This document shows positions 22,605 through 64,000 of a stretch of 64,000 nt of DNA, one piece after another. This DNA comes from Podarcis liolepis (taxonomy: Eukaryota): assembly GCA_965112155.1 (NCBI GenBank), contig OZ218105.1, one strand, 5' to 3'. The first letter of the stretch is position 1; each line of letters starts with the position of its first letter. The position numbers and the translations under genes are program-made. The notes beneath the pieces were generated by a model. That model ran no database searches and had not been told where the DNA came from. It was given only the letters and a program-made list of their open reading frames with translations.

Positions 22605-22966
22605 TCCCCTTTTGCTTTCTTTAACGACCACATGAAACTTGAGAAGCCATCTAAAGCTAAATCATTTAGTGGAGNNNNNNNNNNNNNNNNNNNNNNNNNN
22701 NNNNNNNNNNNNNNNNNNNNNNNNNNNNNNNNNNNNNNNNNNNNNNNNNNNNNNNNNNNNNNNNNNNNNNNNNNNNNNNNNNNNNNNNNNNNNNNNNNNN
22801 NNNNNNNNNNNNNNNNNNNNNNNNNNNNNNNNNNNNNNNNNNNNNNNNNNNNNNNNNNNNNNNNNNNNNNNNNNNNNNNNNNNNNNNNNNNNNNNNNNNN
22901 NNNNNNNNNNNNNNNNNNNNNNNNNNNNNNNNNNNNNNNNNNNNNNNNNNNNNNNNNNNNNNNNNN
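22605..22966 (+). other. PLAG1: PLAG1 first coding exon: 5'UTR part visible at 22605-22674, remainder (start codon, NLS, ZF1-ZF2) inferred to lie in the N gap
   Basis: Acceptor ttttttttttccAG ends at 22604. TCCCCTTTTGCTTTCTTTAACGACCACATGAAACTTGAGAAGCCA..TCATTTAGTGGAG matches the recalled PLAG1 5'UTR just upstream of the ATG. The N run then begins. Confidence 0.7.
22675..22966. other. Assembly gap (292 N)
   Basis: Run of n bases seen directly. Confidence 1.
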
Positions 22967-23493
22967 TTAAACTCTATTTATTTTTCAGATTATATTATCA
23001 TTTGTTGGCCATTTTAAGCTTTGTAAACGTATATATCTGTGTACACTTCAGCTGATTTGCAGGGAGGAAATGTTAGTTAATTTAGACATCAGATTGTAGA
23101 AGTATAAACTATAGTGCATAGTTTTACAAGCTAATATCTTTCAGTCTTTGTGTGTGTTTTCAAAGAGGAGTTTAAAGCTTTTTTCAGTTGTATAAACATG
23201 TTGCAAAGAAGTGTATGAATTGAGCATTTTTGCTATGGGCATAATTGAAATATTCATATATAATGAAATATATTATTAAAATAACTTAAACATCAAACTA
23301 AAATGTCAATTGAAATGAAATTGCTTGTAATGTGTGATTTGGTATATTTAAGTATGGCATTTAATGTCTATAGTGACATGTCTTTTGCAAAATATTTGTT
23401 TGAAAAAAATAGTTTAGTATTTAGCTGCCATTAAATGAACACGTGTACTTTTTGATCAAAATAATTACTTACAGAATATATCTGTGTTTCAAG

Positions 23494-24757
23494 GCATATG
23501 GCTACTCATTCTCCTGAGAAAACCCACAAGTGTAATTATTGTGAGAAAATGTTTCATCGAAAAGATCACCTAAAGAATCACCTACATACACATAATCCCA
23601 ATAAAGAGGCCTTTAAGTGTGAAGAATGTGGAAAGAACTACAACACGAAGCTTGGGTTTAAGCGTCACCTGGCTTTGCATGCTGCAACAAGTGGTGACCT
23701 CACCTGTAAAGTATGTTTGCAGACATTTGAAAGCACAGGGGTGTTGCTGGAGCACCTAAAAACTCATGCAGGCAAATCATCAGGTGGAGTGAAGGAGAAA
23801 AAGCACCAGTGTGAACATTGTGATCGTCGGTTTTACACCCGAAAGGATGTCCGGAGACACATGGTAGTGCACACTGGAAGAAAGGACTTCCTCTGTCAGT
23901 ATTGCGCACAGAGATTTGGCCGGAAGGATCACCTAACACGGCATATGAAGAAAAGTCACAACCAAGAACTTCTGAAGGTCAAAACAGAGCCAATGGATCT
24001 ACTAGACCCATTTCCTTGCAATGTTTCTGTGCCTATAAAGGACGAGTTACTTCCAGTGATGTCTTTATCTTCCAGTGAACTGACATCAAAGCCATTTACA
24101 AACACTTTGCAATTAAATCTCTACAATACTCAGATTCAGTCCATGCAGAGCTCAACATCTGCACACCAAATGGTTGCCACATCATTACCTTTAGGAATGC
24201 CTTGTCCAATAGATATGGAATCTGTCCATCCTTCTCACCAGCTCTCTCTAAAATATCCACTCAGTTCTACCTCATATACAGTTTCTATGACTGATAAAGA
24301 GCAGCCATTGAAAGGGGAAATTGAAAGTTACTTAATGGAACTGCAAAGTGGTATGCCTTCTTCATCCCAAGATTCTCAAGCATCTTCATCTAAATTAGGG
24401 TTGGATCCTCAAGTAGGACCACTAGATGATGGATCTGGGGATGTTTCCCTTTCGAAAAGTTCAGTTTCTATTAGTGAACCTCTAAGCACCCCATCACTGG
24501 ACTTCTCTCAGTTATTCAATTTTATACCTGTAAATGGACCTCCTTTTAATCCTTCTGTTTCTGTAGGAAATCTTGGAATGAGTTACACGCAAGAGGAAGC
24601 ACATTCATCTATGGCGCAGCTTCCTCCACAGGCACAAGATCCACATGACCCTGGTAATGGTATAGGCCTTGGGTCTTTGCATTCATTATCAGCAGCTTTC
24701 ACAAGCAGTTTAAACACAACCACAACCTTACCACGTTTTCATCAAGCTTTCCAATAG
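23494..24757 (+). CDS. PLAG1: PLAG1 zinc finger protein, last coding exon (end of ZF2, ZF3-ZF7, Ser-rich activation domain)
   Basis: ORF HMATHSPEKTHKCNYCEKMFHRKDHLKNH... has five complete C2H2 fingers, SUMO consensus sites VKTE/IKDE/LKGE and the C-terminus LPRFHQAFQ*. Acceptor tttcaAG at 23492-23493 (phase 2). Synteny with MOS and RPS20 favours PLAG1 over PLAGL1/2. Confidence 0.97.
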
Positions 24758-37013: not shown

Positions 37014-38033
37014 ATGCCATCCCCTCTTCCACATAGTCGTCTTCTCCATCTGGAATTTTCTCCATCTGTGGAAACACGACCCTGTAGTAGTCCCTTGGTG
37101 TTTCCTGCCAAACGTGAAAAGTTGGGGGAAGGTCCGTTGCCTAGGGCTCGTCGGCTACCCTCTCGTGTAGCTTGGTGTTCTATAGACTGGGATCAGTTGT
37201 GCCTGCTGCACCCCCTAGGCTCTGGTGGCTTTGGTTCTGTCTACAAGGCTACATACCATGGAGCTACAGTGGCTGTAAAGCAGGTAAAAAAATGCAGTAA
37301 GAACCGTTTGGCATCACGGCAGAGCTTCTGGGCAGAACTAAATGCAGCACGCCTTGATCACAAAAATGTGGTGCGTATAGTAGCTGCTAGCACATGTGCC
37401 CCTGGCAATCAGGATAGTTTGGGCACCATAATAATGGAGTATGTAGGAAATAGGACTCTGGACCATGTTATCTATGGGACTGGCTGTATAACAGCTAAAA
37501 AGAAAGATGATCAGCTGAGTATAGCTCAGTGTCTGGGCTACTCCTGTGACATTATGGCAGGCTTAGTGTTTCTCCATTCACATTTGATTGTGCATCTGGA
37601 TTTGAAACCTGCCAACATATTCATCACTGAACACAATGTTTGCAAGATTGGAGACTTTGGATGTTCCCAAAAGCTACAGAATGCTGCATCTGACCCACAA
37701 CTTTGTCAACAAGGGGGAACATACACCCACCGTGCTCCTGAACTCCTTAAAGGTGAGCGAGTCAACCCCAAGGCAGACATCTACTCTTTTGCCATCACCC
37801 TCTGGCAAATGGTTACACAGCAAGAGCCTTATTCGGGTGAGCGCCAGTATGTACTCTACTCTGTTGTAGCTTATAACCTGCGCCCTTCTCTGACTGCAGC
37901 TGTGTTTAGAGAATCAACCACTGGCCAAAAGCTTGAAAATATAATTGGAAGCTGTTGGAGAGCTGATGTAGCAGAGCGTCCTAGTGCAGAACTTCTCCTT
38001 CACAATCTTCAGTCCCTGTCTCTAATAGTATAA
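37014..38033 (+). CDS. MOS: Proto-oncogene serine/threonine kinase Mos (intronless, 339 aa)
   Basis: MPSP N-terminus, [70 protein letters not shown]. Single uninterrupted ORF between PLAG1 and RPS20. Confidence 0.98.
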
Positions 38034-43400: not shown

Positions 43401-45215
43401 GCACTGTTGGTTGGATATATCATTGTACAAAGCAGAAGAGAGGTTTTTTGCTGTCCAACAGGTACAAAATTGTGGTAAAATGGTCATCTGACCATTTTGG
43501 AGAAATCATATTGGAGAACAACATGATTAGACAGTTGTATAGTCACCTACTACCGGTACTTTTATTTTTTTCTTGCTTTATTTCTTGTTAGAACATGTGT
43601 TCATACTAGGATTTTATAGTATCTTATTAAAAGCATTCGGTTCATTATTATGTAAAATGTTCCATTAAGCCTGTTGCTTAAAAACAGGCTCACCATAAAT
43701 GAACTTGGGTGAGGACTAAGGGGTTAATACATGTAAGGGTGAAGTTGTTCCAAAGAAAGCATAACCTAATTCCAAAATGTGTCTGATTGTGAGGAAGAAT
43801 AAAGTTAAAAGTTGGCAGATCTGTAACACAAGGAATACCGCAAAGATAAATTATTCTGCCCTAGTTGCATATGTTCAGAACATTGGTGTTCTTGGTTGTG
43901 TCCTGCCTTTGAACCATCCTGTTTAAAATGCAAATATTCATATACTGTCGCACTAGTCAATTATAAGACTGAAAAGTGATTCATTCTTTCCAATACTTCA
44001 TAATAGGTCTCCCTAAGGACAAAAAGTTGAATACATCACTATCTATCCCATACGTATTTGTCTTTGTCTGGAAATAGAAGTCAGTTTGCAGCAAGTGGGG
44101 AGTGATCCTATTTCTCCCCCCTCCCAGCACCATTTTGCCACTGCAGATTGCCTCCCCATGCTTTGCACCCAAATGTGTATAGTTGCTCAGAAATACCCTT
44201 GAGTTCAATGCAGATTACATCTAAGTAAGTGGAAGTCTTAAGACTGCAAGTCTAAGAATGCTGTGGGTTCAATCACTCTAAAACAGATTGGTTGACCCAG
44301 AGTATCTTTGAAACAAAGCTTTGGTCTCTGAGCATTTGTGGGAGTAAAACCAGCGCTCAATGGAGTAATTCCACGCATGCTTGTTTGGGCTTTCAGCATC
44401 ATCGGCTTCAGTGGGCCTTCCCCCTAACTCCAGCAACGTGGTTAACACAGGTGCCTCCCATCTCTACAATTACAGTATATTGATTCTATGAGCGAGGCTA
44501 ATCGGAGTCAATCACTGCTGAAATGGAAGGCAGCCTGGAGCTAGAGATATAAATAGTTTAAAAAGGGGCGAGGGAGGTTCCGGGGCCAAATTCTAATTTG
44601 ACAGACGAGGCTTGGCATCCTGGGTAAACTGCAGAGCAGCAAACTCAGAGCAGCAAAAGCCACAGCAGAAGACGCCTTGTGAGTACACTACTACTGTATA
44701 AGTTTACCCTTCGATGGAGGGGGGCGGGAGTGTCTTATTCTGGATCAATCGGAAATTCCACATTTCAGAAGGAAGGTTTTAGAGTTTCCTTTCCTTCTTG
44801 CCGGAATAAAGGGGGAAATGACAGAAGGGAGATCCTACGCTTTCCCTCGGGGAAAAGGACCCAGCTACCGGCATAAGCCTAAAGCCCATCGCACAGCCAT
44901 GGCGGCTACCCTCCCTACCCCGACCCGCCGCCCTGAAGAACTACTTCCGCCCCTGCCTCGCTTCGCAGGCCCAGCCCTCGCCCTCGCCGCTTCTCCTCCC
45001 CATCCATCCACCCGAATCGGTTCCGGGGCGAAGTGGGGGGAGAAAGGGGCGGGGCGTGTGTGGCTCGGCGAGCCTATAAAGCCCGCGCCGCCTCGCCACC
45101 CGCCCTCTTTGCGTCCGTGTCTCGGCGAGGCGTTTGTTTCCTGACTCACCGCTGTTCCCCGGGCCTCGCGCGCTTCGGCCAGGAATAAGTCGGTCAGGAA
45201 GGCTCCGCGGCGGCC

Positions 45216-49152
<3,937 letters not shown>

Positions 49153-51220: not shown

Positions 51221-52719
51221 CCCAGTGAGTATTTGAAGTACAAAGACCTGTTTCACTATTACCGTACTTTCTATTCAAAGAGTGGGTGGGTGGGGTACAG
51301 ATTGAAGCCCTGAGAGGCAATATTGAAGGCCAGGACAAAGGTTTCCCAGTAGTAAATGGGGATGTGTGCTTCTAATGCCTGTTCAAGGTTGTTGAGGTTC
51401 CTGTGTGGATATAATCTGCTTGGCATATGGGAGTGCCCTGCATAACTTTAAATGGGAAAAAAATCTGTGGCCTTCCAGATGTTGCTGGACTGCAACTACC
51501 CTTATTGCTTACTATTGGAAATGCTAGTTGGGGCTTAGTTGATGGCAGACCTATAGCATCTGAAGGGCACATTGACTGTACCTGATCTTGAGATATTTTG
51601 TAAATATAATAGTAATAAGATTCTAGCAGACACAGCTGATGGGAACTGGAGTCCAATAACATCTAGACCAGAGTGGGTGGCAGCCCCATCACTTGATCAA
51701 AAACCCAATAGGCCTAATGAGGTTGCCGACTCCTGGCTCAAACACAGGTGCCAGAAAACTGAATACAACCATTATCAAGCTTACTCTCTGGCAGTGAGGA
51801 TGGAGAAGAAACATAATTTCACCACTGCATTCTTGAACTGTAGTCTGGTATGGACAGCCCAGGACATTTTCCTTCCTGAGTCAAAGGTCAAAAAGGTGTC
51901 TCCTCCGTTCCACATACAGCTGAACCTTAATTCATGACTGACATGATGGTGACCACTGGCTAGCTTAGGGGGTGCAGGGTAGCATGTAAACTGCTTTGAG
52001 CCCCCCCCCCCAGTCAAGTGGTATATAATTTTTTAAAAAATTAAATAATAAATACAGTTCCATTCTTCAATGACTCACTATGGTTCCCCTGTCCTGAACC
52101 CCACCATCTGCCAACGGAAATTTGAGAAAGGTTGTTTTTATTTTTTATTAGTTTTTATTAAAGATTTTCTCAAGTTACAAAACAAACTGAGAAAGGTTGT
52201 TGAGAGCAAGCATGCTGCCTGCCACAGACTACACCGGAGTCTTCATGCTTCACATGTGTGTGCCACGCCAAGTCCTGAGTGAATCAGGGAGAGTGTTTCT
52301 CTCTTCATGTGAGGCTGGCATAGGTTTGCACAGACAGCTAGAGGTGTTCTGAAATGCCTTTGGAAAGTCAGTAAAGTGGGCATAAGTAGAAATGCTGAGC
52401 TGGATTCCTTAGATCTGGTGAGGGCAGGAGGAGTGGCAAAGCTGCTTTATTTGCTGCTGCCTCACCCTTCAAGCCAGCCTCCATCATCCTGGATGTGTAC
52501 ACCACATTTCCTTTTATATTATTATACAGTCTGCCCTCCCAGCACTGTTCATCTGAACAGAGGTGAGCAGCAGACAGCAGAGCTTGTTCATTGGTTCCCC
52601 TATGACAGAAGTAGCTGGTGCTCTCCAGATACTGTTGGAGTACAACTCCTATCATCCCTGACCATTGGCCATGCTGGCTGGGGCTGATGGGAAAATATGG
52701 AGGCTACCCCTGCTCTGGT

Positions 52720-53075
52720 GGGACACGGGTGGCGCTGTGGGTTAAACCACAGAGCCTAGGACTTGCCGATCAGAAGGTCAGCGGTTCGAATCCCCGCAAC
52801 GGGGTGAGCTCCCGTTGCTCGGTCTCAGCGCCTGCCAACCTAGCAGTTCGAAAGCACGTCCAAGTGCAAGTAGATAAATAGGTACTGCTCCGGCGGGAAG
52901 GTAAATGGCATTTTCGTGCGCTGCTCTGGTTCGCCAGAAGCAGCTTAGTCATGCTGGCCACATGACCCGGAAGCTGTACGCCGGCTCCCTCAGCCAATAA
53001 AGCGAGATGAGCGCCGCAGCCCCAGAGTCAGTCACGACTGGACCTAATGGTCAGGGGTCCCTTTACCTTTACCTT
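52720..53075 (+). mobile_element. Full-length Sauria SINE
   Basis: tRNA-related head with A box (gtggcgctgtgg) and B box (ggttcgaatcc); (ACCTTT)n tail; TSD TACCCCTGCTCTG at 52705-52717 and 53076-53088. Confidence 0.92.
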
Positions 53076-53859: not shown

Positions 53860-53999
53860 TCCTCATTGGTCAACAGCCTCTCTATAAAACTTGGGGGAAG
53901 GGCATAGTAGGTCTGACTGAAGCAGTAGTGGAAAGCACAATTTGTCTGTGTTAGCAAAGACATAAGAAGCTAGCGGTGTTTGTAGGAGTATTAAAACAG
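53860..53999 (+). promoter_or_regulatory. Putative promoter and non-coding first exon of the KIF20A-like gene
   Basis: ATTGG 53865, TATAAAA 53883-53889, then ~90 nt ending in a strong donor ACAG|GTATGT at 54000. The next exon starts 7 nt before its ATG, so an upstream UTR exon is required. Confidence 0.55.
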
Positions 54000-55140
54000 G
54001 TATGTATGATGAAAATGTAAAGTTCATGATAGAAAAAAGTTATTTGGTAAAGAAAAACAAGTATGTGTATAAAGACTAAGAATAAGGAAAAGTCTGAATG
54101 CAGGTATAGGAAGGGTCTAACAGCCTAATTCCATGCATGCTCTTCTTTTAGAAGTAAGTTTGTTTTGTTCAATGGAGCTTTCTCCCAAGTAAGTGTGCAT
54201 AAGATTGCAGCAATTTAGCTTGACCCTATTCAATGTTAGATAAACCTAAGAACATTGGAATCAATGGGCCTAAGCTCTCCTTTCAGGATCAAGCTGCAAG
54301 TAAAACTAGGTATATGAGTGAAAAGAGGAGGCAATAATGGAACAAAGACATTTTCTTTTTGAAGTAATGTATTGATAGGTGTAAAGTGTTGTGCATATGC
54401 AAGTTTAGTTAGTAATTATGTACGTTTTCAGAACCAAGAGCTAATTCTTTTTATCTCACATTCTGGGATTTCATTTTTTTATGGGAGGCAATTGAAATAC
54501 AGTTTTTTGCCAGCTCAGGAGTGCTGTTTACCATGCCTTTATCTTCCTGCTTGAGAAAAGAATAGGTTTGTTAGTACAGGTGCCATGAACTCTGTGCATG
54601 CACTGAACTACTCTTCTACGTGCTGAATAGACATTGATGGTGGGTCCAGATTCATTTTCTGACGTCATGTACGCATTTCGTAGGCTTCGATGATATGTCT
54701 TTAGTTATTCTGGATCTGTAAAATTAAGAGAGTCTTGCTCAGCATCAGAGGCTGGGGCTCAGGATCGGAGCATCTGTTTTGAGACCGATTGGAGAGCTGA
54801 TGTCAGTCAGTGTGTAGACAATGCTGAGCTAGGTAGACCAATGATCTGACCCACTAAAAGGCCCTTCCCTATGTTCCAGTGCTGCCTGGCTTAATAGTGA
54901 GCCTATTGAGACTTGGTTGCTGCCAATGTGCTTTGTGAACATGGTCACTTATAGCCTGTTTGTGTTCTGGTGAGCAAAAACAAAACCAACAAGAAAACCC
55001 TTAATTTCTTGAACGATAGCAAATGTTGAGTTCGGAAGGTGGAACCAGGAAACTGGACTTGAATTCCAGATCTGCCATATACCTGTACTCATTTTTTAAA
55101 CCTTGACAAATGAGTGGGGAAGGAGCAGTCATTGCTAATA

Positions 55141-55355
55141 CAGTGGTACCTTGGGTTACAGATGCTTCAGATTACAGACTCCGCTAACCCAGAAATAGTA
55201 CCTCGGGTTAAGAACTTTACCTCAGGATGAGAACAGAAATCATGCGGCAGCAGCGGGAGGCCCCATTAGCTAAAGTGGTACCTTAGGTTAAGCACAGTTT
55301 CAGGTTAAGAACGGACCTCCAGAATGAATTAAGTTCTTAACCCGAGGTACTACTG
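55141..55355. mobile_element. Tigger/pogo-like MITE
   Basis: TA TSDs; TIRs CAGTGGTACCTTGGGTTA / TAACCCGAGGTACTACTG. Confidence 0.85.
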
Positions 55356-55559
55356 TAGTGATCTTCCTTTAGTGCCTTGTGCTGGCTGTGGTTTTTTCTT
55401 GTTTGGAAAGGCTCTGAGAACTAAATTCCTTGTCACCTACTATTACTTTTTGGTTAAAATCCATGTGGGTGGATTTCCTTCAGATAGCAAACATCAAGAA
55501 TTGTAACATTGGGTTGGATCCAGAGTGAATTAGTTATTTATATCAATGGGACATCCCTT

Positions 55560-55908
55560 TTTGTTGTTTAGTCGTGTCTGACTCTTCATGACCCTATGGA
55601 CCAGAGCACACCAGGCACTCCTGTCCTCCACTGCCTCCTGCAGTTTGGTCAAACTCATGCTGGTAGCTTCGAGAACACTATCCAACCGTCTCGTCCTCTG
55701 TCGTCCCCTTCTCCTTGTGCCCTCCATCTTTCCCAACATCAGGGTCTTTTCCAGGGAGTATTCTCTTCTCATGAGGTGGCCAAAGTATTGGAGTCTCAGC
55801 TTCAGGATCTGTCCTTCCAGTGAGCACTCAGGGCTGATTTCCTTAAGAATGGAGAGGTTTGATCTTCTTGCAGTCCATGGGACTCTCAAGAGTCTCATCC
55901 AGCACCAA
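55560..55908 (-). mobile_element. BovB/RTE LINE 3' fragment
   Basis: ORF RLLRVPWTARRSNLSILKEISPECSLEGQILKLRLQYFGHLMRR..LEKTLMLGK is the BovB ORF C-terminus; TSD GGGACATCCCTT at 55548-55559 and 55909-55920. Confidence 0.92.
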
Positions 55909-56113
55909 GGGACATCCCTTAGTTACACCTAACTTCTCATGCTGATTTCAGTGCAGCCAAAGTAGAACTTAGTTGCTGTAGATACAACCCGTTAACTTCA
56001 CCAGGAAGTGATCTATTGTCCATAAAATACGTATATATACACTTGTGTCTTGTTTAAAAGTTGGATAGTGTACAGACCTGCTATTTCTTTTCCCCATCTT
56101 ATACAGCAAAAGA

Positions 56114-56224
56114 ATGAATTGTCAGGAAAGACAAAGAATAACATCCACTGCTGAGAGTATGGCAGAATTGATGTCTATGGACTCGTCAGAAGTATCCAAC
56201 ACCAGAGATGAGCAGGAAGAGGAG
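56114..56224 (+). CDS. KIF20A-like first coding exon
   Basis: Acceptor atacAG ends at 56106; ATG at 56114; MNCQERQRITSTAESMAELMSMDSSEVSNTRDEQEEE; donor GAG|gtgggc; phase 0 into the next exon. Confidence 0.65.
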
Positions 56225-59200
56225 GTGGGCTGCTTGCTATTAATTTCATAAGCATTTGTGTAGTTTTCTATTGGTTGTGCATAGCAAATGCTTAGAATGA
56301 AAACTCTGTTCCTTTAGACATATATTTCAAAGACTAAAAACCAGTCTGCAATAGACTTCGGCATAGCCATTGACTTATCAATACCAACATGGACAAGCTG
56401 ACGGGGGTAGTTTTATTTAAAATGCACTATATTAAATGCTAGAAATTTATAAAATGAAGATGCAGCTATTAAAACTTTACAGCTTTTGAAATATAAAACT
56501 TCCACTCAGTTTTAACTTTCCAGTGAACTAAGTAGGGGAAGCAGTCGGGTGTTGGATATGTGCATTTTATTAGCGTTTTCACTGAGTTCAAATAGGATTT
56601 GCAGGACATATAATACCCTCACTGTGCCACTCTTGGTTAAAAATGCAGTTCTATAATTGTATTCTCAGGGGCGGGAGGGGTGGAGACTATCTGAGTGTTA
56701 AAGAGAAGGAAAGTTTTAAGGTGGAGAAGTAATCTTTTTGAGCAGAAGTCAAAGCTTCGGCAAAGCATGAAGACAAATGACAGGATATTGAAGAACTATT
56801 TTCAATATTTTCACAATTTCAGCCTTAATTTATTATTCCTTTTTTTAAGGTGATGTATCAGCCACTGAAAGTATACTTGAGAGTGCGGCCCTTTTCTAAG
56901 GCAGAGCTTGAAAACAATGAAAACCAGGTTAGTTGTGAAATATGGCATCATTTTTAAAAATCTTTTGTGGGGAATTGCATTCAAAAACAGTTTGGGAAAT
57001 AGAAATCTTTTACCTATTTTTTGTCTGTAATATGCTGTGGTGGTCCTTACTTACCTTCTCCAAACTCCATCATTACAATTGTAGCACCCTGCTTGTGGTT
57101 AACGCTTAGCTGGAATGAAATATTCAACGCAGCAATAGAGAAATTAAAATAATAATTTATTTGTCAGACAAATAAATGAGAGACACAGTGGTATATGGAT
57201 ACCAAAGCTCTGCCCACTCCAGCCCTGATGGCCAGCACTTATATTTCCTCAGCCCAGCCCCCTTGCTCCTCCTTTGGCTGCCTCTGTCCAATCAGCCTGG
57301 TTGAAATTCCTATTGGCTGTTTGCTTGAACCAATCATAAAAGATACACCCATTTCCTATTACCTTTTATGGGAGACAAAGAGCTATATTTCCTTCTATCC
57401 ATAAATGGCAGACAAGTAGCCATATATCTTACATTTGCCTCGACAAGCACCTTAATTATCAGATCATCTTTGCCCTATTGCCCTATTCACTCCAAAACAG
57501 ATGGCTAAAACAGATGGCTCATGGTAACAGAGATCTTGGGTTCACCTTCTCACACACCATCAATGAAATAAGAATCTAACATAAGAATCTAACATTTCTT
57601 ACTTTCTAAATCCTTTGCATACTTACATTTAAGCCAATATATTTCATACATTAACATATATAGCTTTTTAGAAGAAAAGGAACTTAGTAAAAACAGTTTC
57701 CAAAAGCAACCCCTTAAATTTACACCCTCCTTTCAAGCCAGCTGCTGTTCCTATTAGCTCTTGCCCTTTAACCTTATGAAAATATGGCTCAAGTCTAATG
57801 GGAGGCACCTAGTATTATTTTCTGTTAAACAATAAATCTCACTATTTACCAACTCTTAATTGTGTTTTTGCAGCTTGATTGTATTCTGTAATTTGTATGG
57901 TCAGTATGACCTTTTGCTCCCAGCCTGTAATTTCCTTTTACAACTTTAAGGTACTGCTATAGATCAGGGGGGCCCTTGATCAAGAAGATAAACAACTGCC
58001 AGAGTACTCAGCCAGCTGCTTTATGTCTGGCATGAAACATACAAACATTTGCAAATATGTTTTTTTAAGCTCATTTTAAAATACAAGCCTTGATCAGATG
58101 CCTCACAATGAGGTTACATTGCCTTAGTATGCACATAGTTAGTTTGCTTATACTTGCTGTGAGTCACCCTTCACAAGATTTGGACACTAAAACAGCTGGA
58201 TAAGCATGACATATGTAGCAGTCTAGGTTTTTAGATGATGAAGCTTAGATAACTGTACCACTGAAATGCTCCAATGAGATTGTTAGAAAACTGGCTCTCT
58301 TGCACCAGAGCATGGGTAGGCAATGCGGTTACCTTCTGATTTTGTTGGGAGTCCCACTCCCATCAGCCCCAACCAGCATAGTCAGTGATGATAGGAGCTA
58401 TAGCCCAATACCATCTAGGGAACACCATACCCCTGACCAAACAGTAATGTTTGAAACTTTGCATTTAACTACACTACGTCAAAGTGCAGCTTGCACACTG
58501 AGGCTGCATGCATACCACACATTTAAAGCACATGACTGTCCCTAAATAATCCTGGGAACTATAGTTTAAGGGTGCTGAGCAGGGCCGGCCCACCCAGGAG
58601 GCAAGTTGTAGCAGCAGCTTCAGGCTGCATGGGGTAACAGATCCCCTTGTTCTTGGTGTAGATTTTCCCTCGCCCCTTCTAATCTGGTGTGGAGGGGGAC
58701 ACCATTTTGGTGCCAAGTTTTTCTTGGGCTGGTCCTGGTGCTGAGAATTGTAGCTCTGTAAGCAGTGAGCTACAGGTCCCAGGTCCCAGGTCCCAGGATT
58801 CTTTGGGAGAAGTCACCTGCTTTGAAGACACTTGAAAGGTACAGTGTTTACACAGCAGCAGAATCGCATGCACCAAAAGGTCACAAATGAAACCACGTCA
58901 GTAAGTGTAAAACCGGTTTGTAGCATGCAATTTAGTAGGCAAAGAAAGTTTTAGGAAGCTGGTTAAAATAACTTGTGTTCTCTTAAGGACTGTTTGATTA
59001 TTGAAAATCAAGAAACAGTGACTCTTCACGCACCTAAATACTCTACTGCTATGAAGAACAGTGAAAAGGGAATTGGACAATCGGCGCATCAGTTCACTTT
59101 TACTCAGGTGAGTTCTCCTCCAGGGCCAATTTCAGTGAAAATAAATAAATAAATGTGCATAAAGCAGACTGCATTAGAACACTTGGTGCAGGCTGTTCCT

Positions 59201-62200
59201 GTTTCTGTAAGTAGTGAGAACTCAGAGCAAAATATAGCTGACTCCCAAACAGATGCACAGGACTTCAGTCTTAAAGTGCACCATTCCATTAATTGCATGC
59301 TGCTTTCCTGTACTGTATAGTAAAGTTCTTAAAGGTGATTATTCTTTTGATCTTTATACCAATTGTATGGAAAGTGACAGTGGGGCAGTGAAAATGGATT
59401 CTACGTGCCCTAATGGTGGCTAAGAGACCAATACTGTTGAACTGGAAGAATAGAAATATGATTCCCCTTAAACAGTGGCTTGACAAACATGACAATATTA
59501 GCAGCATATGAGCAGACTGCCTATGGACACAGACTTTCTTTGGATAAATATAATGATATTTGTAACAACTTTATACAGAATATATGAGGTTGTTGTTAAA
59601 GAAATTTGTGTTAGGATAATAAGACTATACACATTTGTATATTTGTGGAAACGTAATGGAGTATTTTTCTTTTATTTGAATTTTCACTCCCCCCCCCCCC
59701 TTCTCACCACTTTTCAATAAATGAAATTCTTCTAATAAAATATCAATAATACTTTTAAGAGGATTCAGTGGTGCATTGCTCTGAGGATCAAATTGGCTGT
59801 GGCATGGTATGACTTGTCATAAGCAAAGCAATTAAACTGCTTTTCTGTGCCAAACTGGATGTAACATGAATCTATAAATGACATATTCTATGGGTTTTTT
59901 TAAAACATTGTCAGTAGCTGCTGAAAGTTCTAATTTGGATCAGAATAATTACACTTGGGTTTGGGGGTTAACCCTTCCCCTCCAAGTCATTCCCCATTCT
60001 AATCACCCTTTCCCCAAAGTTGCTATTTGCCTCATGGGGAAAACCATATAGGTATAATTTGACTTCATGAGGCAAATGACAACTCTGTAGGAGAGGGAAG
60101 GACTGGTGGTGAGAAAACATTAAGCTCCATGGTCCCAGCTTGAAGTAGGCCCCTATAGATGCTGCTATTAACACTTCAGTTAGTCAGAGATCCCACTCAC
60201 ACCTCATGTGTACAGTTTGCTCCTCACTGTCCCTGTAAAACTTTTTCCTATTCTCTACTTAGGTGTTTGGACCAGAGACTTCTCAAAGTGAATTTTTTGA
60301 AGGCACAATGAATGACATAGTAAAAACTTGTATCAACGGAGTGAATGGACTTGTGTTTACCTATGGTGTGACTAACGCAGGCAAAAGTTTCACAGTTCAA
60401 GGTATCCAATTATTCTTCATGGGGTCAAATACAAAAGATCTAACAATGGCATGTATTGAAAAGAGGCTCATTGTTTCTGCAGGCTGCTCAAAAGACGGTG
60501 GTATCCTTCCCCGCTCTCTTGATCTCATATTTAACCATGTAAGGGGAAGACAGTATCCAAAGATGAACATAAAACCATGCTTCAGCAATCTTACCAAGAG
60601 GCTAAATGATATGCAGGTTAAGCAAGAAGAATCCATCAAAGCTGCCCTTCTTGCTTCTCTGAAAGAGGTTAGTGGCATCACCCTTCCAGATCCTGCCTTA
60701 AAATCCACACCATGTAGAACTACTCATTCCTTGGAAACCCCAACAACAAATTCATATAAGCCTCTCAAGGGGCTTGGTTTAAGGGGGTTCTGGACTATAG
60801 CACTGCTGTAGTTCTTTGGGTTAGATTATGTGGGGTGGAAACACTGCAGAAAACAGTGGCAAGGATGGGCACTGGTTTATAGCCATCTTAAATTCCCCAG
60901 AATTCCTCTGGATCCTGAGATAGCCACCTAACCTTGCACTTCTCTTTGAAACACTGGGACATCTTTGAAAAATGTGGGCGAGATTAAAATGTTTTGGAAA
61001 GGAGGTTGGCACCACTGGTTATGGGGCTTTATGGGAGCTGTTGGCTCCAGCATTGTCACATTATGCTGATGGAGAGCAGGTTCTCAAGCTTCCGAATGCA
61101 AATGAGGTGGTGGCCTTGCTTCTCATAACTGTAAGAAAGGCACTGGGGCCTAATTTGGTTAGTAGAATGTCTGTCATCTGGTGGGAGGGCCTTAAGTGTT
61201 GTGCTCTGGAATTGGCCCATCCCTTCGGGGGTTCAGTTCAGTTAGATGGAGGGCCAAGTTTGGCCATCACAGAGTTAGAGAAACCAACTGTCATTCTTGC
61301 CTCAGGGTGTTGTTTTAATTTATCTCAGACAGTATGTTATTGTGTTACAATTTTCTTTATTATTAAAACTTTGTTTGACGTATACATGAGCCGCTTACTA
61401 TACTGAAAGAAAAGAAACTGATGAAGAATGGTGGAATATCCTATACTGTATGAGTGAGGGGCTATTCCCAGTTTGACAGGAGGATTGGTGTTTTTTAATC
61501 ACCCCCTCCCTCCACAACAAAAAACATTCACAGAGAAGGCTTGCATGCTTGTTTTAAAGTGATTGTTCTGTAAGATGCTTCTGAAAGGTTGGAAAGAAAG
61601 TAATTTATAAATAAATACTCTGATTTTTCTTTTTTTCATTTGAGACCACTTCCGAAAGCAGGAAACATGCATGACTGGTGTTTTCAGCTTCTTGTGCATT
61701 TATGCACTCATGCCACTGCTGTATATGTTGTGTGCAACAAGTTGGCCTTATTCTCCTAGTCTTATGCATTTCCAAGGTGCGGTATTTCTGATTGCTGAAT
61801 CATGCTGTTCACTTCAGGAGGAATCTTTAGCTATTATGATAATGCAGCAGAGCATTCAAGGGAACTTCTCGAAGCATTTTGCTGTTTGGCATGGAGGTTT
61901 ACAGAAGGAAGGAAGAAATAAGATAAATGGATTTCTTCTCAATCCCTTAGGTCAGGGGTGGGGAATCTGTGGCCCTCCAGATGTTCCGGGACTCCTGTAC
62001 CCATCAGCCAAGTCAGCATAGTCAGGAATAATGGAAGTTGTAGTTCAAGCAACATCTGGAGGGCCACAACATACTTTCCCTTTCTTACCTGTCTTTTTCA
62101 GTCTCAACCAAAGTCTGGGTTTCATCTTGAATTCTTCTTGGTGATGAAAGTGTTTCTCTTCAACCAGGCATTTGGCTGTTTAACATTCTATAGTTTTAAA

Positions 62201-63474
62201 AATGTGTTTGTGGGAGGGAGGTTATTGGTTTGTTTTCATTTTATTATATATTTTGTATTCTCATTTTGTATTTTCCTGTTGTGAACCACTCGGGATATTT
62301 GGGTGAAGGGTGGTATACAGATTTAATTATTATTATTAATCATAATCTCAAAAAATGCACTTGAATTGTTGTGAATATCCCATTCAAAATTGATTTAATT
62401 AGAACCTATACCAGTTGCTTTGTTTTTAAAAAACTTAATTGGTGGATAGCTTGCCTCCTGTAGAAATTAAAAGATGTGAATACAGAGGCAGCAACATAAC
62501 CTTGACATTTTTGTATTTCATCAAGGATACTGAAAATACTTCAAAGTCTATCACATCTTCAAGTGCATCAGGCTCAACTTCTAGTAGCTGTAGCTCACCA
62601 AGTTTTGTTTTGAATGAATCAGGTAATGGGTGAATATTTGTGGTTAAAAATGCATATAGAATTGTGTAAAATGGTCGCTATAGCATTGCTTACTAATCGT
62701 ATAAAAACAGGATTGATTTTTGTAGGATATTGGGGAAAGAATATCCCTATGTTTATTTATTAAAATATTTGTATATTGACTTTCATATGAATTATCACAA
62801 AATAAAATGATTAAATTCAGAGCAGGCATTTAAAAGAACCCAGCTGGTACTGATGTTTAGCAAAGGCCTCCAGGAATAAATGTGTTTCCAGCATGTGCCA
62901 AAGTCGTCAGAGAGGGAGGTGGTACCACAGGAAGGGCATTGCTGTTGAAAAGACCCCCCTCCTGGTCACCGCTAAGTGAATCACCGGGAAGCACAATGCA
63001 ACCAGGAGCACCTCATCCAATGATTTTAGTGCAATAATGTGTAGTAATGCAAAAGTATGTGCCTTGCACCAAATGCTTAAACAAAAATGGTGCAATATCT
63101 GTCCTGGGAGGAAGTATCCATAAATGAGAACAAAAATAGCTGTAAGTTCTGCTGCTGTAAGTTGTCTTAAACTGTTTCTGATACTGTGTTTTAATGTTGG
63201 AACGTGACCTTAGGGCAAAGGGCAGTTAAATAAATTTAACCTTACAATAAACAACAGGCATTACAGTTGCTCCCTTTATTCACCATCCTTGAATGTTTAG
63301 ATTCTGAGGTTTATACCAAGTGCCCCAGGACCCTAGCATCTGTTTGGGTTTCTTTCTTTGAAATCTACAATGAGTACATCTATGACCTACTGGATGTAGT
63401 GCCTGCATCGAAGAATCAGAAGCGCAAAGTTTTAAAGATATGCGAAGATCAGGGAGGAAACTCTTACGTAAAAG
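56114..63474 (+). CDS. Kinesin-6 family KIF20A-like protein, 5' part; join(56114..56224,56850..56927,58988..59107,60263..60401,60483..60667,62526..62622,63301..63474), continues beyond the window
   Basis: All exons have GT-AG boundaries and compatible phases. Motifs LKVYLRVRPF, HQFTFTQVFGPET, P-loop YGVTNAGKS, DGGILPRSL, a long L6 insert typical of kinesin-6, and SVWVSFFEIYNEYIYDLL. Confidence 0.9.
56850..56927 (+). CDS. KIF20A-like exon (start of motor domain)
   Basis: VMYQPLKVYLRVRPFSKAELENNENQ; AG/GT flanks. Confidence 0.9.
58988..59107 (+). CDS. KIF20A-like exon
   Basis: DCLIIENQETVTLHAPKYSTAMKNSEKGIGQSAHQFTFTQ; donor CAG|gtgagt. Confidence 0.92.
60263..60401 (+). CDS. KIF20A-like exon with P-loop
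   Basis: VFGPETSQSEFFEGTMNDIVKTCINGVNGLVFTYGVTNAGKSFTVQ(G). Confidence 0.93.
60483..60667 (+). CDS. KIF20A-like exon (alpha2, start of L6 insert)
   Basis: CSKDGGILPRSLDLIFNHVRGRQYPKMNIKPCFSNLTKRLNDMQVKQEESIKAALLASLKE; donor GAG|gttagt. Confidence 0.92.
62526..62622 (+). CDS. KIF20A-like exon (Ser-rich L6 insert)
   Basis: DTENTSKSITSSSASGSTSSSCSSPSFVLNES; phase 0 in and phase 1 out, matching both neighbours. Confidence 0.8.
63301..63474 (+). CDS. KIF20A-like exon (beta4, EIYNE)
   Basis: SEVYTKCPRTLASVWVSFFEIYNEYIYDLLDVVPASKNQKRKVLKICEDQGGNSYVK; donor AAG|gtaatg. Confidence 0.92.
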
Positions 63475-63554
63475 GTAATGCAGCAACTTTGGTGGTACTG
63501 CTTCAAAGGAATAATTACTCTTTGGGTCTAATTATCTCAAGAATCCATCTAGCC

Positions 63555-63998: not shown

Positions 63999-64000
63999 AT

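Follow-up and report, generated by a model that had tools for sequence, protein, structure and literature searches.

Which kinesin-6 gene lies downstream of the ribosomal protein gene RPS20 in Podarcis liolepis? A stretch of 64,000 nucleotides from contig OZ218105.1 of this organism (assembly GCA_965112155.1), referred to here as the window, contains a series of exons that encode the beginning of a kinesin motor. The textbook set of vertebrate kinesin-6 proteins comprises three members, KIF20A, KIF20B and KIF23. The original prediction, made from the sequence alone, was of an intact third kinesin-6 gene resembling KIF20A, distinct from it and kept in reptiles. We conclude, with a probability of about 85%, that the stretch represents the 5' part of an orthologue of KIF20AL, comprising its first seven coding exons (~301 codons), perhaps preceded by an exon without coding sequence. 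KIF20AL, a clade name that follows the chicken gene symbol, is on this reading an old jawed-vertebrate paralogue of KIF20A and KIF20B, with all three descended from a single invertebrate KIF20-type gene, and has been kept downstream of RPS20 on the same strand.

The kinesin coding exons (E1 to E7) extend over positions 56114-63474 of the plus strand; together they specify ~300 residues from the N-terminus of a kinesin-6 motor. All seven are free of stop codons and are bounded by polypyrimidine-AG acceptors and GT donors with matching phases. They are given below with the presumptive 5' end; X1 and X5 denote RNA sequencing runs from the same organism.

53860-54000, plus strand: possible promoter and short non-coding first exon, proposed from the sequence
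56114-56224, plus strand: E1, ATG plus 37 codons, acidic and Ser-rich N-terminus without homology; predicted from the open frame, the ATG, the donor GT that follows at 56225 and a likely acceptor AG (56105-56106)
56850-56927, plus strand: E2, 26 codons, start of the motor (KVYLRVRPF); donor joint at 56927 present in X1 and X5 contigs
58988-59107, plus strand: E3, 40 codons; both joints present in X1 and X5 contigs
60263-60401, plus strand: E4, 46 codons plus 1 base, P-loop GVTNAGKS; joints present in X1 and X5
60402-60482, plus strand: intron 4, 81 nt, GT..AG, in frame and without a stop; absent from the spliced X1 contig
60483-60667, plus strand: E5, 2 bases plus 61 codons, completing the core beta-strand (GILPRSL) and beginning the L6 insert; joints present in X1
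62526-62622, plus strand: E6, 32 codons plus 1 base, rich in Ser/Thr (56%) and forming the lineage-specific central part of the L6 insert; acceptor from an X1 joint with 30 nt on E6, donor CAG/GTAATG predicted from the frame
63301-63474, plus strand: E7, 57 codons with 2 bases before and 1 base after them, last part of the L6 insert and SVWVSFFEIYNE; predicted from the frame and 85 bits of homology, including its acceptor

The anatomy described in the original prediction is borne out. Borders, frames and phases of the seven spliceable, stop-free exons hold, with the joints from E2 to E6 seen in RNA, and the codons split by introns read GGC (Gly) across E4/E5 and GAT (Asp) across E6/E7. The motifs RVRP, GVTNAGKS and EIYNE are all present, in E2, E4 and E7, respectively. 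Measured from window coordinates, LIFN and SVWVSF are 44+32+1+12 = 89 residues apart, in exact agreement with the length proposed for an L6 insert lacking the SFDSG segment, and a search of the seven exons for the FDSG motif found it absent. The description of the gene as intact is valid for the part inside the window and does not extend to the whole gene, which continues past base 64000. The position from which the gene had been drawn, 53860, begins a segment with an inverted CCAAT near 53866, TATAAAA near 53884 and a GT donor (..aaaacag/gtatgt) at 54000; this segment is possibly a CCAAT/TATA-type promoter followed by a short non-coding first exon. Because intron 4 is in frame and stop-free, the mechanical open reading frame (ORF) 60263-60811 runs across E4, the intron and E5. 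Retention of this intron would insert 27 residues directly after the P-loop; in X1 RNA it is spliced out. A 152-residue ORF of a relative (P0001) likewise spans its own intron 4, with the intron part of low similarity.

The Pfam Kinesin domain (PF00225) matched E4 with 44.6 bits (E 1.2e-11) and E7 with 29.3 bits, at the cut-off (E 5.5e-07), and together with the Walker A pattern GxxxxGK[ST] these matches identify a member of the kinesin superfamily. The long L6 insert and the N-terminal extension before beta-1 are those of the kinesin-6 family. Among solved structures the best matches of E5 (8e-11) and E7 (5.5e-13) were KIF20A chains; E5 matched KIF20A chains only, and the L6 insert aligned to the L6 region of KIF20A. 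The ZEN-4 structure 5x3e matched E7 at only E 0.072, against the value above for KIF20A, and the structure matches of E5 and E7 place the gene outside the KIF23 (MKLP1) orthogroup.

That KIF20A provides the best solved structures, and that nearly all close relatives of the gene carry the NCBI name 'kinesin-like protein KIF20A', would both fit a gene that is the KIF20A orthologue itself, fast-evolving and moved to the RPS20-LYN interval from the BRD8/CDC23 neighbourhood in which KIF20A resides. To place the exons, one profile was built per clade and the window exons were scored singly, with the following results in bits.

E2: KIF20AL 36.5, KIF20A 20.1, KIF20B 12.6, invertebrate 25.4
E3: KIF20AL 59.2, KIF20A 47.9, KIF20B 25.3, invertebrate 30.9
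E4: KIF20AL 76.2, KIF20A 58.4, KIF20B 55.8, invertebrate 54.4
E5: KIF20AL 88.8, KIF20A 56.9, KIF20B 50.1, invertebrate 60.2
E7: KIF20AL 85.5, KIF20A 69.6, KIF20B 56.8, invertebrate 66.9

Every conserved exon is thus closer to KIF20AL than to KIF20A, KIF20B or the invertebrate KIF20 genes. The excess over KIF20A amounts to 16.4 bits for E2, 11.3 for E3, 17.8 for E4, 31.9 for E5 and 15.9 for E7, so that a moved KIF20A is disfavoured by 11-32 bits in each of the five. KIF20B gave the lowest or near-lowest scores in the conserved exons, which places the gene outside that orthogroup as well. E1 and E6 scored ~0 bits against all clade profiles, and no homology was found for them. Mapped onto the exons with tblastn, turtle and crocodile KIF20AL proteins were 67-80% identical (80% for turtle in E2) and tuatara KIF20A was 40-60% identical. 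In a search of a representative protein library with E5, the best full-length matches were proteins of a newt (P0008, 64% identity), a sawshark (P0010) and an anchovy (P0031), with the paddlefish KIF20A P0061 ranking below all three; the ORF P0001 was 84% identical to the E5 query.

A maximum likelihood tree of motor domains (42 rows, 454 columns; support given as bootstrap / Shimodaira-Hasegawa-like approximate likelihood ratio test) provided a further view of the family. The trees comprise public proteins other than KIF23, and the window gene is placed relative to them through its per-exon scores. Three vertebrate clades were recovered: KIF20A (100/100), with the window-type clade outside it, KIF20B (100/99), and a clade of shorter proteins, including those of the shark and the anchovy, which is KIF20AL (100/99). 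Single-copy invertebrate KIF20-type genes were set apart (100/99), and the branching order of the three vertebrate clades was not resolved. The motor phylogeny that had been suggested as a check on the gene's identity, carried out here with public KIF20A and KIF20B proteins and without KIF23, therefore yields a separate third clade. On these profiles and trees we assign the exons to the KIF20AL clade and not to KIF20A or KIF20B.

Traits of the proteins were compared across 120 KIF20AL and 119 KIF20A proteins and in the window.

Median residues before RVRP: KIF20AL 53, KIF20A 67, window 47
Median distance from ILPRSL to WVSF: KIF20AL 101, KIF20A 120, window 94
FDSG motif: KIF20AL 0/120, KIF20A 112/119, window absent
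P-loop: KIF20AL GVTNAGKT (115/120), KIF20A GITNSGKT or GVTNSGKT, window GVTNAGKS

With its GVTNAGK, its lack of FDSG and its shorter N-terminus and L6, the window gene carries the traits of the KIF20AL clade, bar the final S in place of T. The 47 residues N-terminal to RVRP, counted from window coordinates, agree with the short N-terminus that had been noted as unlike that of KIF20A, and clade, FDSG and P-loop all set the gene apart from the KIF20A orthogroup.

Many vertebrate species possess both genes. The best 120 matches of the newt protein P0008 were proteins of ~780-870 residues belonging to amphibians (salamanders, frogs and caecilians), turtles, a crocodile and many birds, and the best 120 matches of P0061 were proteins of ~884-900 residues, partly from the same species and encoded on other chromosomes. 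Eight species in the tree contain both, and the species with both genes include Lissotriton, Ambystoma, Spea, Rhinatrema, Mauremys, Struthio, Apus and Coturnix. A true KIF20A, 903 residues long, also occurs in the tuatara, the closest lepidosaur that could be compared. A search with the anchovy protein showed that the ~800-840-residue 'KIF20A' models of gar, bowfin and all teleost orders are of the KIF20AL type. When such fish proteins were forced into KIF20A, the tree was 40.4 log-likelihood units worse and was rejected by the approximately unbiased test (p 0.0025). A translocated KIF20A is therefore contradicted by clade support, per-exon scores, the missing FDSG, the co-occurrence of both genes and the fish constraint test, and we regard it as very improbable; the proposal that the gene is a paralogue distinct from KIF20A holds.

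The range of the clade also bears on its age. The original prediction placed the gene in reptiles, and squamate models were absent among the best 120 matches, both of which would suit a duplicate of KIF20A or KIF20B that is young, confined to one lineage and of reptilian origin. The clade, however, spans a shark, ray-finned fishes (gar, bowfin and teleosts), amphibians, turtles, crocodile and birds, and in a 54-row tree the gar, bowfin and teleost proteins formed a clade (support 100) beside tetrapod KIF20AL with the shark outside, which follows the species tree. Linkage to RPS20, moreover, is common to chicken and a characiform fish (below). A recent origin is the least probable of the alternatives that we considered, and the gene is not a retrocopy because it has introns. 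The claim of a gene kept in reptiles is correct as to the reptile copy, but the range is far wider than stated. Similarly, the term 'third kinesin-6' is appropriate for a third KIF20-type gene, but the gene is the fourth vertebrate kinesin-6 once KIF23 is counted. The KIF20AL motor evolves at 1.37 times (1.16-2.0) the rate of KIF20A in the same species pairs; as it is only this much faster it is constrained, and from its sequences we consider the clade to be old and under constraint.

No mammal was found among the best 120 matches in the P0008 or anchovy searches, a blank that proves nothing, since squamates were equally absent from them, and a protein-cluster search returned kinesin clusters labelled 'Chordata' only. 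To our knowledge KIF20AL is not in the established human or mouse kinesin catalogue, and the loss in mammals that the original prediction proposed would have its basis there. Among the best 120 matches listed, the species with a true KIF20A included paddlefish, sturgeons, bichir, reedfish and coelacanth, but neither gar nor bowfin; KIF20AL-type proteins came from gar, bowfin and teleosts, with none from sturgeons or bichirs. This pattern could be reciprocal loss or an effect of taking only the best 120 matches.

Expression of the gene was evaluated with RNA runs from Podarcis liolepis, with reads mapped over 56800-62799, a span that has E1 and E7 outside it. Runs X1-X4 from one study and X5 from another contained 9-14% of the sampled words of 58900-63500, approximately the share of that interval that is exonic. 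A 698-nt contig from X1 carried the joints 56927/58988, 59107/60263, 60401/60483 and 60667/62526, all GT..AG, and its 146 nt upstream of E2 leave room for E1 plus 35 nt, compatible with that exon. In the second study, a 396-nt contig from X5 joined E2, E3 and E4. Two deep RNA runs from 2026 (X16 and X17) gave no exon reads over the mapped span and had reads on intronic repeats only; the gene was not expressed in those samples, and this provides no further evidence either way. Taken together, the spliced contigs and the blank runs demonstrate an mRNA that has the predicted splicing and is absent from some samples. The exons are genuine and form part of spliced transcripts in Podarcis liolepis. 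Intronic repeats at 57080-57700, 58350-58800 and 61950-62400 attracted many RNA reads and contigs at high depth in all four runs, and an opposite-strand joint between 58379 and 61977 points to a single repeat family with copies in inverted orientation in introns 2 and 5.

Public annotation of this gene is widespread. Models named 'kinesin-like protein KIF20A' exist in well over 200 species, the chicken symbol is KIF20AL, and carp proteins of the clade carry the zebrafish-derived name zgc:56231, which is used in cyprinids. The expectation that automated 'KIF20A-like' models may exist was thus amply justified. A single name is used for both paralogues in, for example, Lissotriton, Ambystoma, Mauremys, Apus and Strix, and no NCBIfam model for the KIF20AL family was found. 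The window gene is accordingly not new; it is an ordinary orthologue of an annotated, barely studied paralogue. Our literature search found no paper on KIF20AL as a family or on its phylogeny, with members appearing only in lists (PMC12193209, PMC11490497). The remark that no functional characterization was known nevertheless has to be amended, as zebrafish zgc:56231 has been described as a maternal-specific mRNA whose knockout lacks an arrest phenotype (PMC11490497). That mRNA gives a strong signal from the 2-4-cell stage and has disappeared by 24 hours post fertilization, and F0 knockouts are viable (PMC11490497). Chicken KIF20AL is differentially expressed, with higher levels in the testes of large-testis cocks (PMC12193209). 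A zebrafish 'kif20a' morphant used as a cardiomyopathy model (PMC5794171) was considered as possibly concerning the KIF20AL orthologue; this idea was rejected, as the morpholino encodes MALASPC, a KIF20A-like N-terminus that mismatches the N-terminus of the KIF20AL-type Danio protein. Because MALASPC resembles true KIF20A N-termini, the morpholino hit true kif20a, and zebrafish therefore has both genes.

The function of KIF20AL can be approached through its orthologues. In an alignment of ostrich KIF20AL with KIF20A, identity is 40% across 836 columns, and both switch motifs (I, SSRSH; II, DLAGSER), the stalk and a similar tail end are kept. Given this identity, and the P-loop, switches, coiled-coil stalk and tail kept in the orthologues, the protein is expected to be a dimeric, plus-end-directed kinesin-6 with an N-terminal motor and a long L6. 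To judge from this conservation, its site of action is most likely that of KIF20A, the anaphase central spindle and the midbody. More weakly, we infer that the gene serves only the germline and the early cleavages, because the zebrafish mRNA is maternal, the chicken signal is in testis, the promoter lacks a CpG island and X16 and X17 are blank where other runs contain spliced RNA. A broader and tentative proposal, which we consider possible but on balance doubtful, is that KIF20AL is the germline and cleavage-stage kinesin-6 of egg-laying vertebrates, the maternal counterpart of KIF20A. It would then act in meiosis and in the rapid divisions that large eggs undergo while transcriptionally silent, and would stand to KIF20A as mcm3l, mcm6l and npm2a stand to general cell-cycle genes. 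If this were true, its absence from the human and mouse catalogue would be part of a wider mammalian loss of maternal paralogues, and the gene would have been overlooked because annotation pipelines name both paralogues 'KIF20A'.

Several points weigh against these conclusions, some against the maternal proposal and others against the gene model. Maternal deletion arrests embryos for mcm3l, mcm6l and npm2a and not for zgc:56231 (PMC11490497), and with neither knockout nor maternal deletion causing arrest, an essential role of zgc:56231 lacks support. The germline or maternal role leans on two papers about other species, and zgc:56231 was assigned to the KIF20AL clade via the UniRef names of carp proteins. 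As to the gene itself, the window covers only ~36% of an expected ~830 codons; the two switch regions, the neck and the stalk of this copy lie beyond base 64000; and E1, the E6 donor and the E7 acceptor are without read cover. The last residue of the P-loop is Ser, unique to the window gene, as Thr (GKT) occupies this position in 120/120 orthologues and in the nearest relative, P0001.

These same features would be expected of a decaying or truncated copy, in which the exons in the window are open and the gene is broken downstream or its motor no longer works. The window ends after E7 with two thirds of the gene outside, the change from Thr to Ser is without parallel among 121 relatives, and two deep RNA runs lack exon reads. 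Against decay, seven open exons retain intact splice sites and correctly spliced RNA was recovered in two studies; each conserved exon remains 67-80% identical to turtle and crocodile proteins; and the clade, retained in lineages from shark to birds, evolves at nearly the pace of KIF20A. The Ser codon (AGT, 60386-60388) is not an assembly error, because the X1 RNA contig carries the same letters, with no differing letter over E4. Ser is permitted by the Walker A rule, and kinesin-3 proteins use it at this position. We consider a decaying copy unlikely, although less so than a moved KIF20A, and retain the reading of the locus as the 5' part of a KIF20AL orthologue.

The neighbourhood of the gene is consistent with this assignment. 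The following features lie upstream of the kinesin within the window.

22670-22990 (approximate): run of N, an assembly gap or masked sequence, in the PLAG1 intron upstream of the zinc-finger exon
23498-24757: C2H2 zinc-finger exon, which we take to be PLAG1
37014-38033: single-exon kinase of 339 residues, which we take to be MOS
45000-46000 (approximate): CpG-island promoter of RPS20, CpG observed/expected (o/e) 1.04-1.09
46623-46724, 47965-48039 and 48970-49125, plus strand: RPS20 coding exons, 91-100% identical by tblastn to the S10 part of P0378
49429-49824, minus strand: copy of a repeat-borne ORF
52500-53000: small rise in G+C (0.54) and CpG o/e (0.54), ~1 kb upstream of the putative kinesin promoter and below the RPS20 island
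55530-55898, minus strand: second copy of the repeat-borne ORF

RPS20 (46623-49125) is followed on the same plus strand by the kinesin from 56114, the arrangement of the KIF20AL locus, with LYN outside the window. RPS20 and MOS had been named as neighbours from the outset, and both are upheld, the former by tblastn and the latter by our reading of the 339-residue kinase. In chicken, a genome-wide association study places KIF20AL in a chromosome 2 interval together with LYN, RPS20, MOS and PLAG1 (PMC12193209), and the chicken KIF20AL protein sits on a 149.9-Mb contig. A model from the fish Metynnis hypsauchen (P0378) contains Ribosomal_S10 at residues 21-112 followed by a KIF20AL-type kinesin at 179-597, in the order and on the strand seen in the window; this RPS20-kinesin fusion is an annotation artefact that records the adjacency and shared strand of the two genes in a teleost. 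No CpG island was found at the 5' end of the kinesin, where CpG o/e is 0.04-0.36, with values of 0.04-0.18 at the possible promoter and first exon. The two repeat-borne ORF copies between RPS20 and the kinesin share the motif ..TRRRGRQRTRWLDSVLEAT..LTKLQEAVEDRSAW.. and probably derive from a transposon-derived element common in this genome.

The window itself is of little consequence: it contains an ordinary orthologue, and models of the gene already exist for hundreds of genomes. The family to which it is assigned has wider implications: sharks, ray-finned fishes, amphibians and sauropsids have a fourth kinesin-6 that is nearly as slow-evolving as KIF20A. The shared name 'KIF20A' invites orthology errors whenever KIF20A findings from mammals are applied to fish, frog or chicken models or the reverse, and the maternal and testis hints from zebrafish and chicken point to a possible role in meiotic or cleavage cytokinesis.

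Comparison with known systems defines the position of the gene. KIF20A (MKLP2, Rab6-KIFL) shares the kinesin-6 motor, the N-terminal extension and the long L6, and KIF20AL orthologues are 40% identical to it at full length. It differs in forming its own clade (100/100), in its P-loop (GITNSGKT or GVTNSGKT), in the presence of FDSG (112/119), in having ~67 residues before RVRP and in its length of ~884 residues. KIF20A is a broadly expressed G2/M gene; expression of KIF20AL, unlike that of KIF20A, looks restricted. KIF20B (MPP1) is a product of the same vertebrate expansion of a single invertebrate KIF20-type gene, and differs in its clade (100/99), its length of ~1800 residues and its per-exon scores, the lowest or near-lowest obtained. 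The zebrafish genes mcm3l, mcm6l and npm2a emerged from the same maternal-transcript screen as zgc:56231, which is likewise a paralogue of a general cell-cycle gene (PMC11490497). Their maternal deletions arrest embryos, whereas zgc:56231 is without phenotype, and the analogy is a hypothesis and not a claim of membership. The closest counterparts are the KIF20AL or zgc:56231-type proteins of ~780-870 residues. From these the window gene, seen over its first ~300 residues only, differs in a P-loop ending in Ser rather than Thr and in its lineage-specific E1 and E6. It belongs with them by its per-exon profiles, its P-loop type (GVTNAGK), the absence of FDSG, N-terminus and L6 lengths within the range of the clade, and the same place downstream of RPS20.

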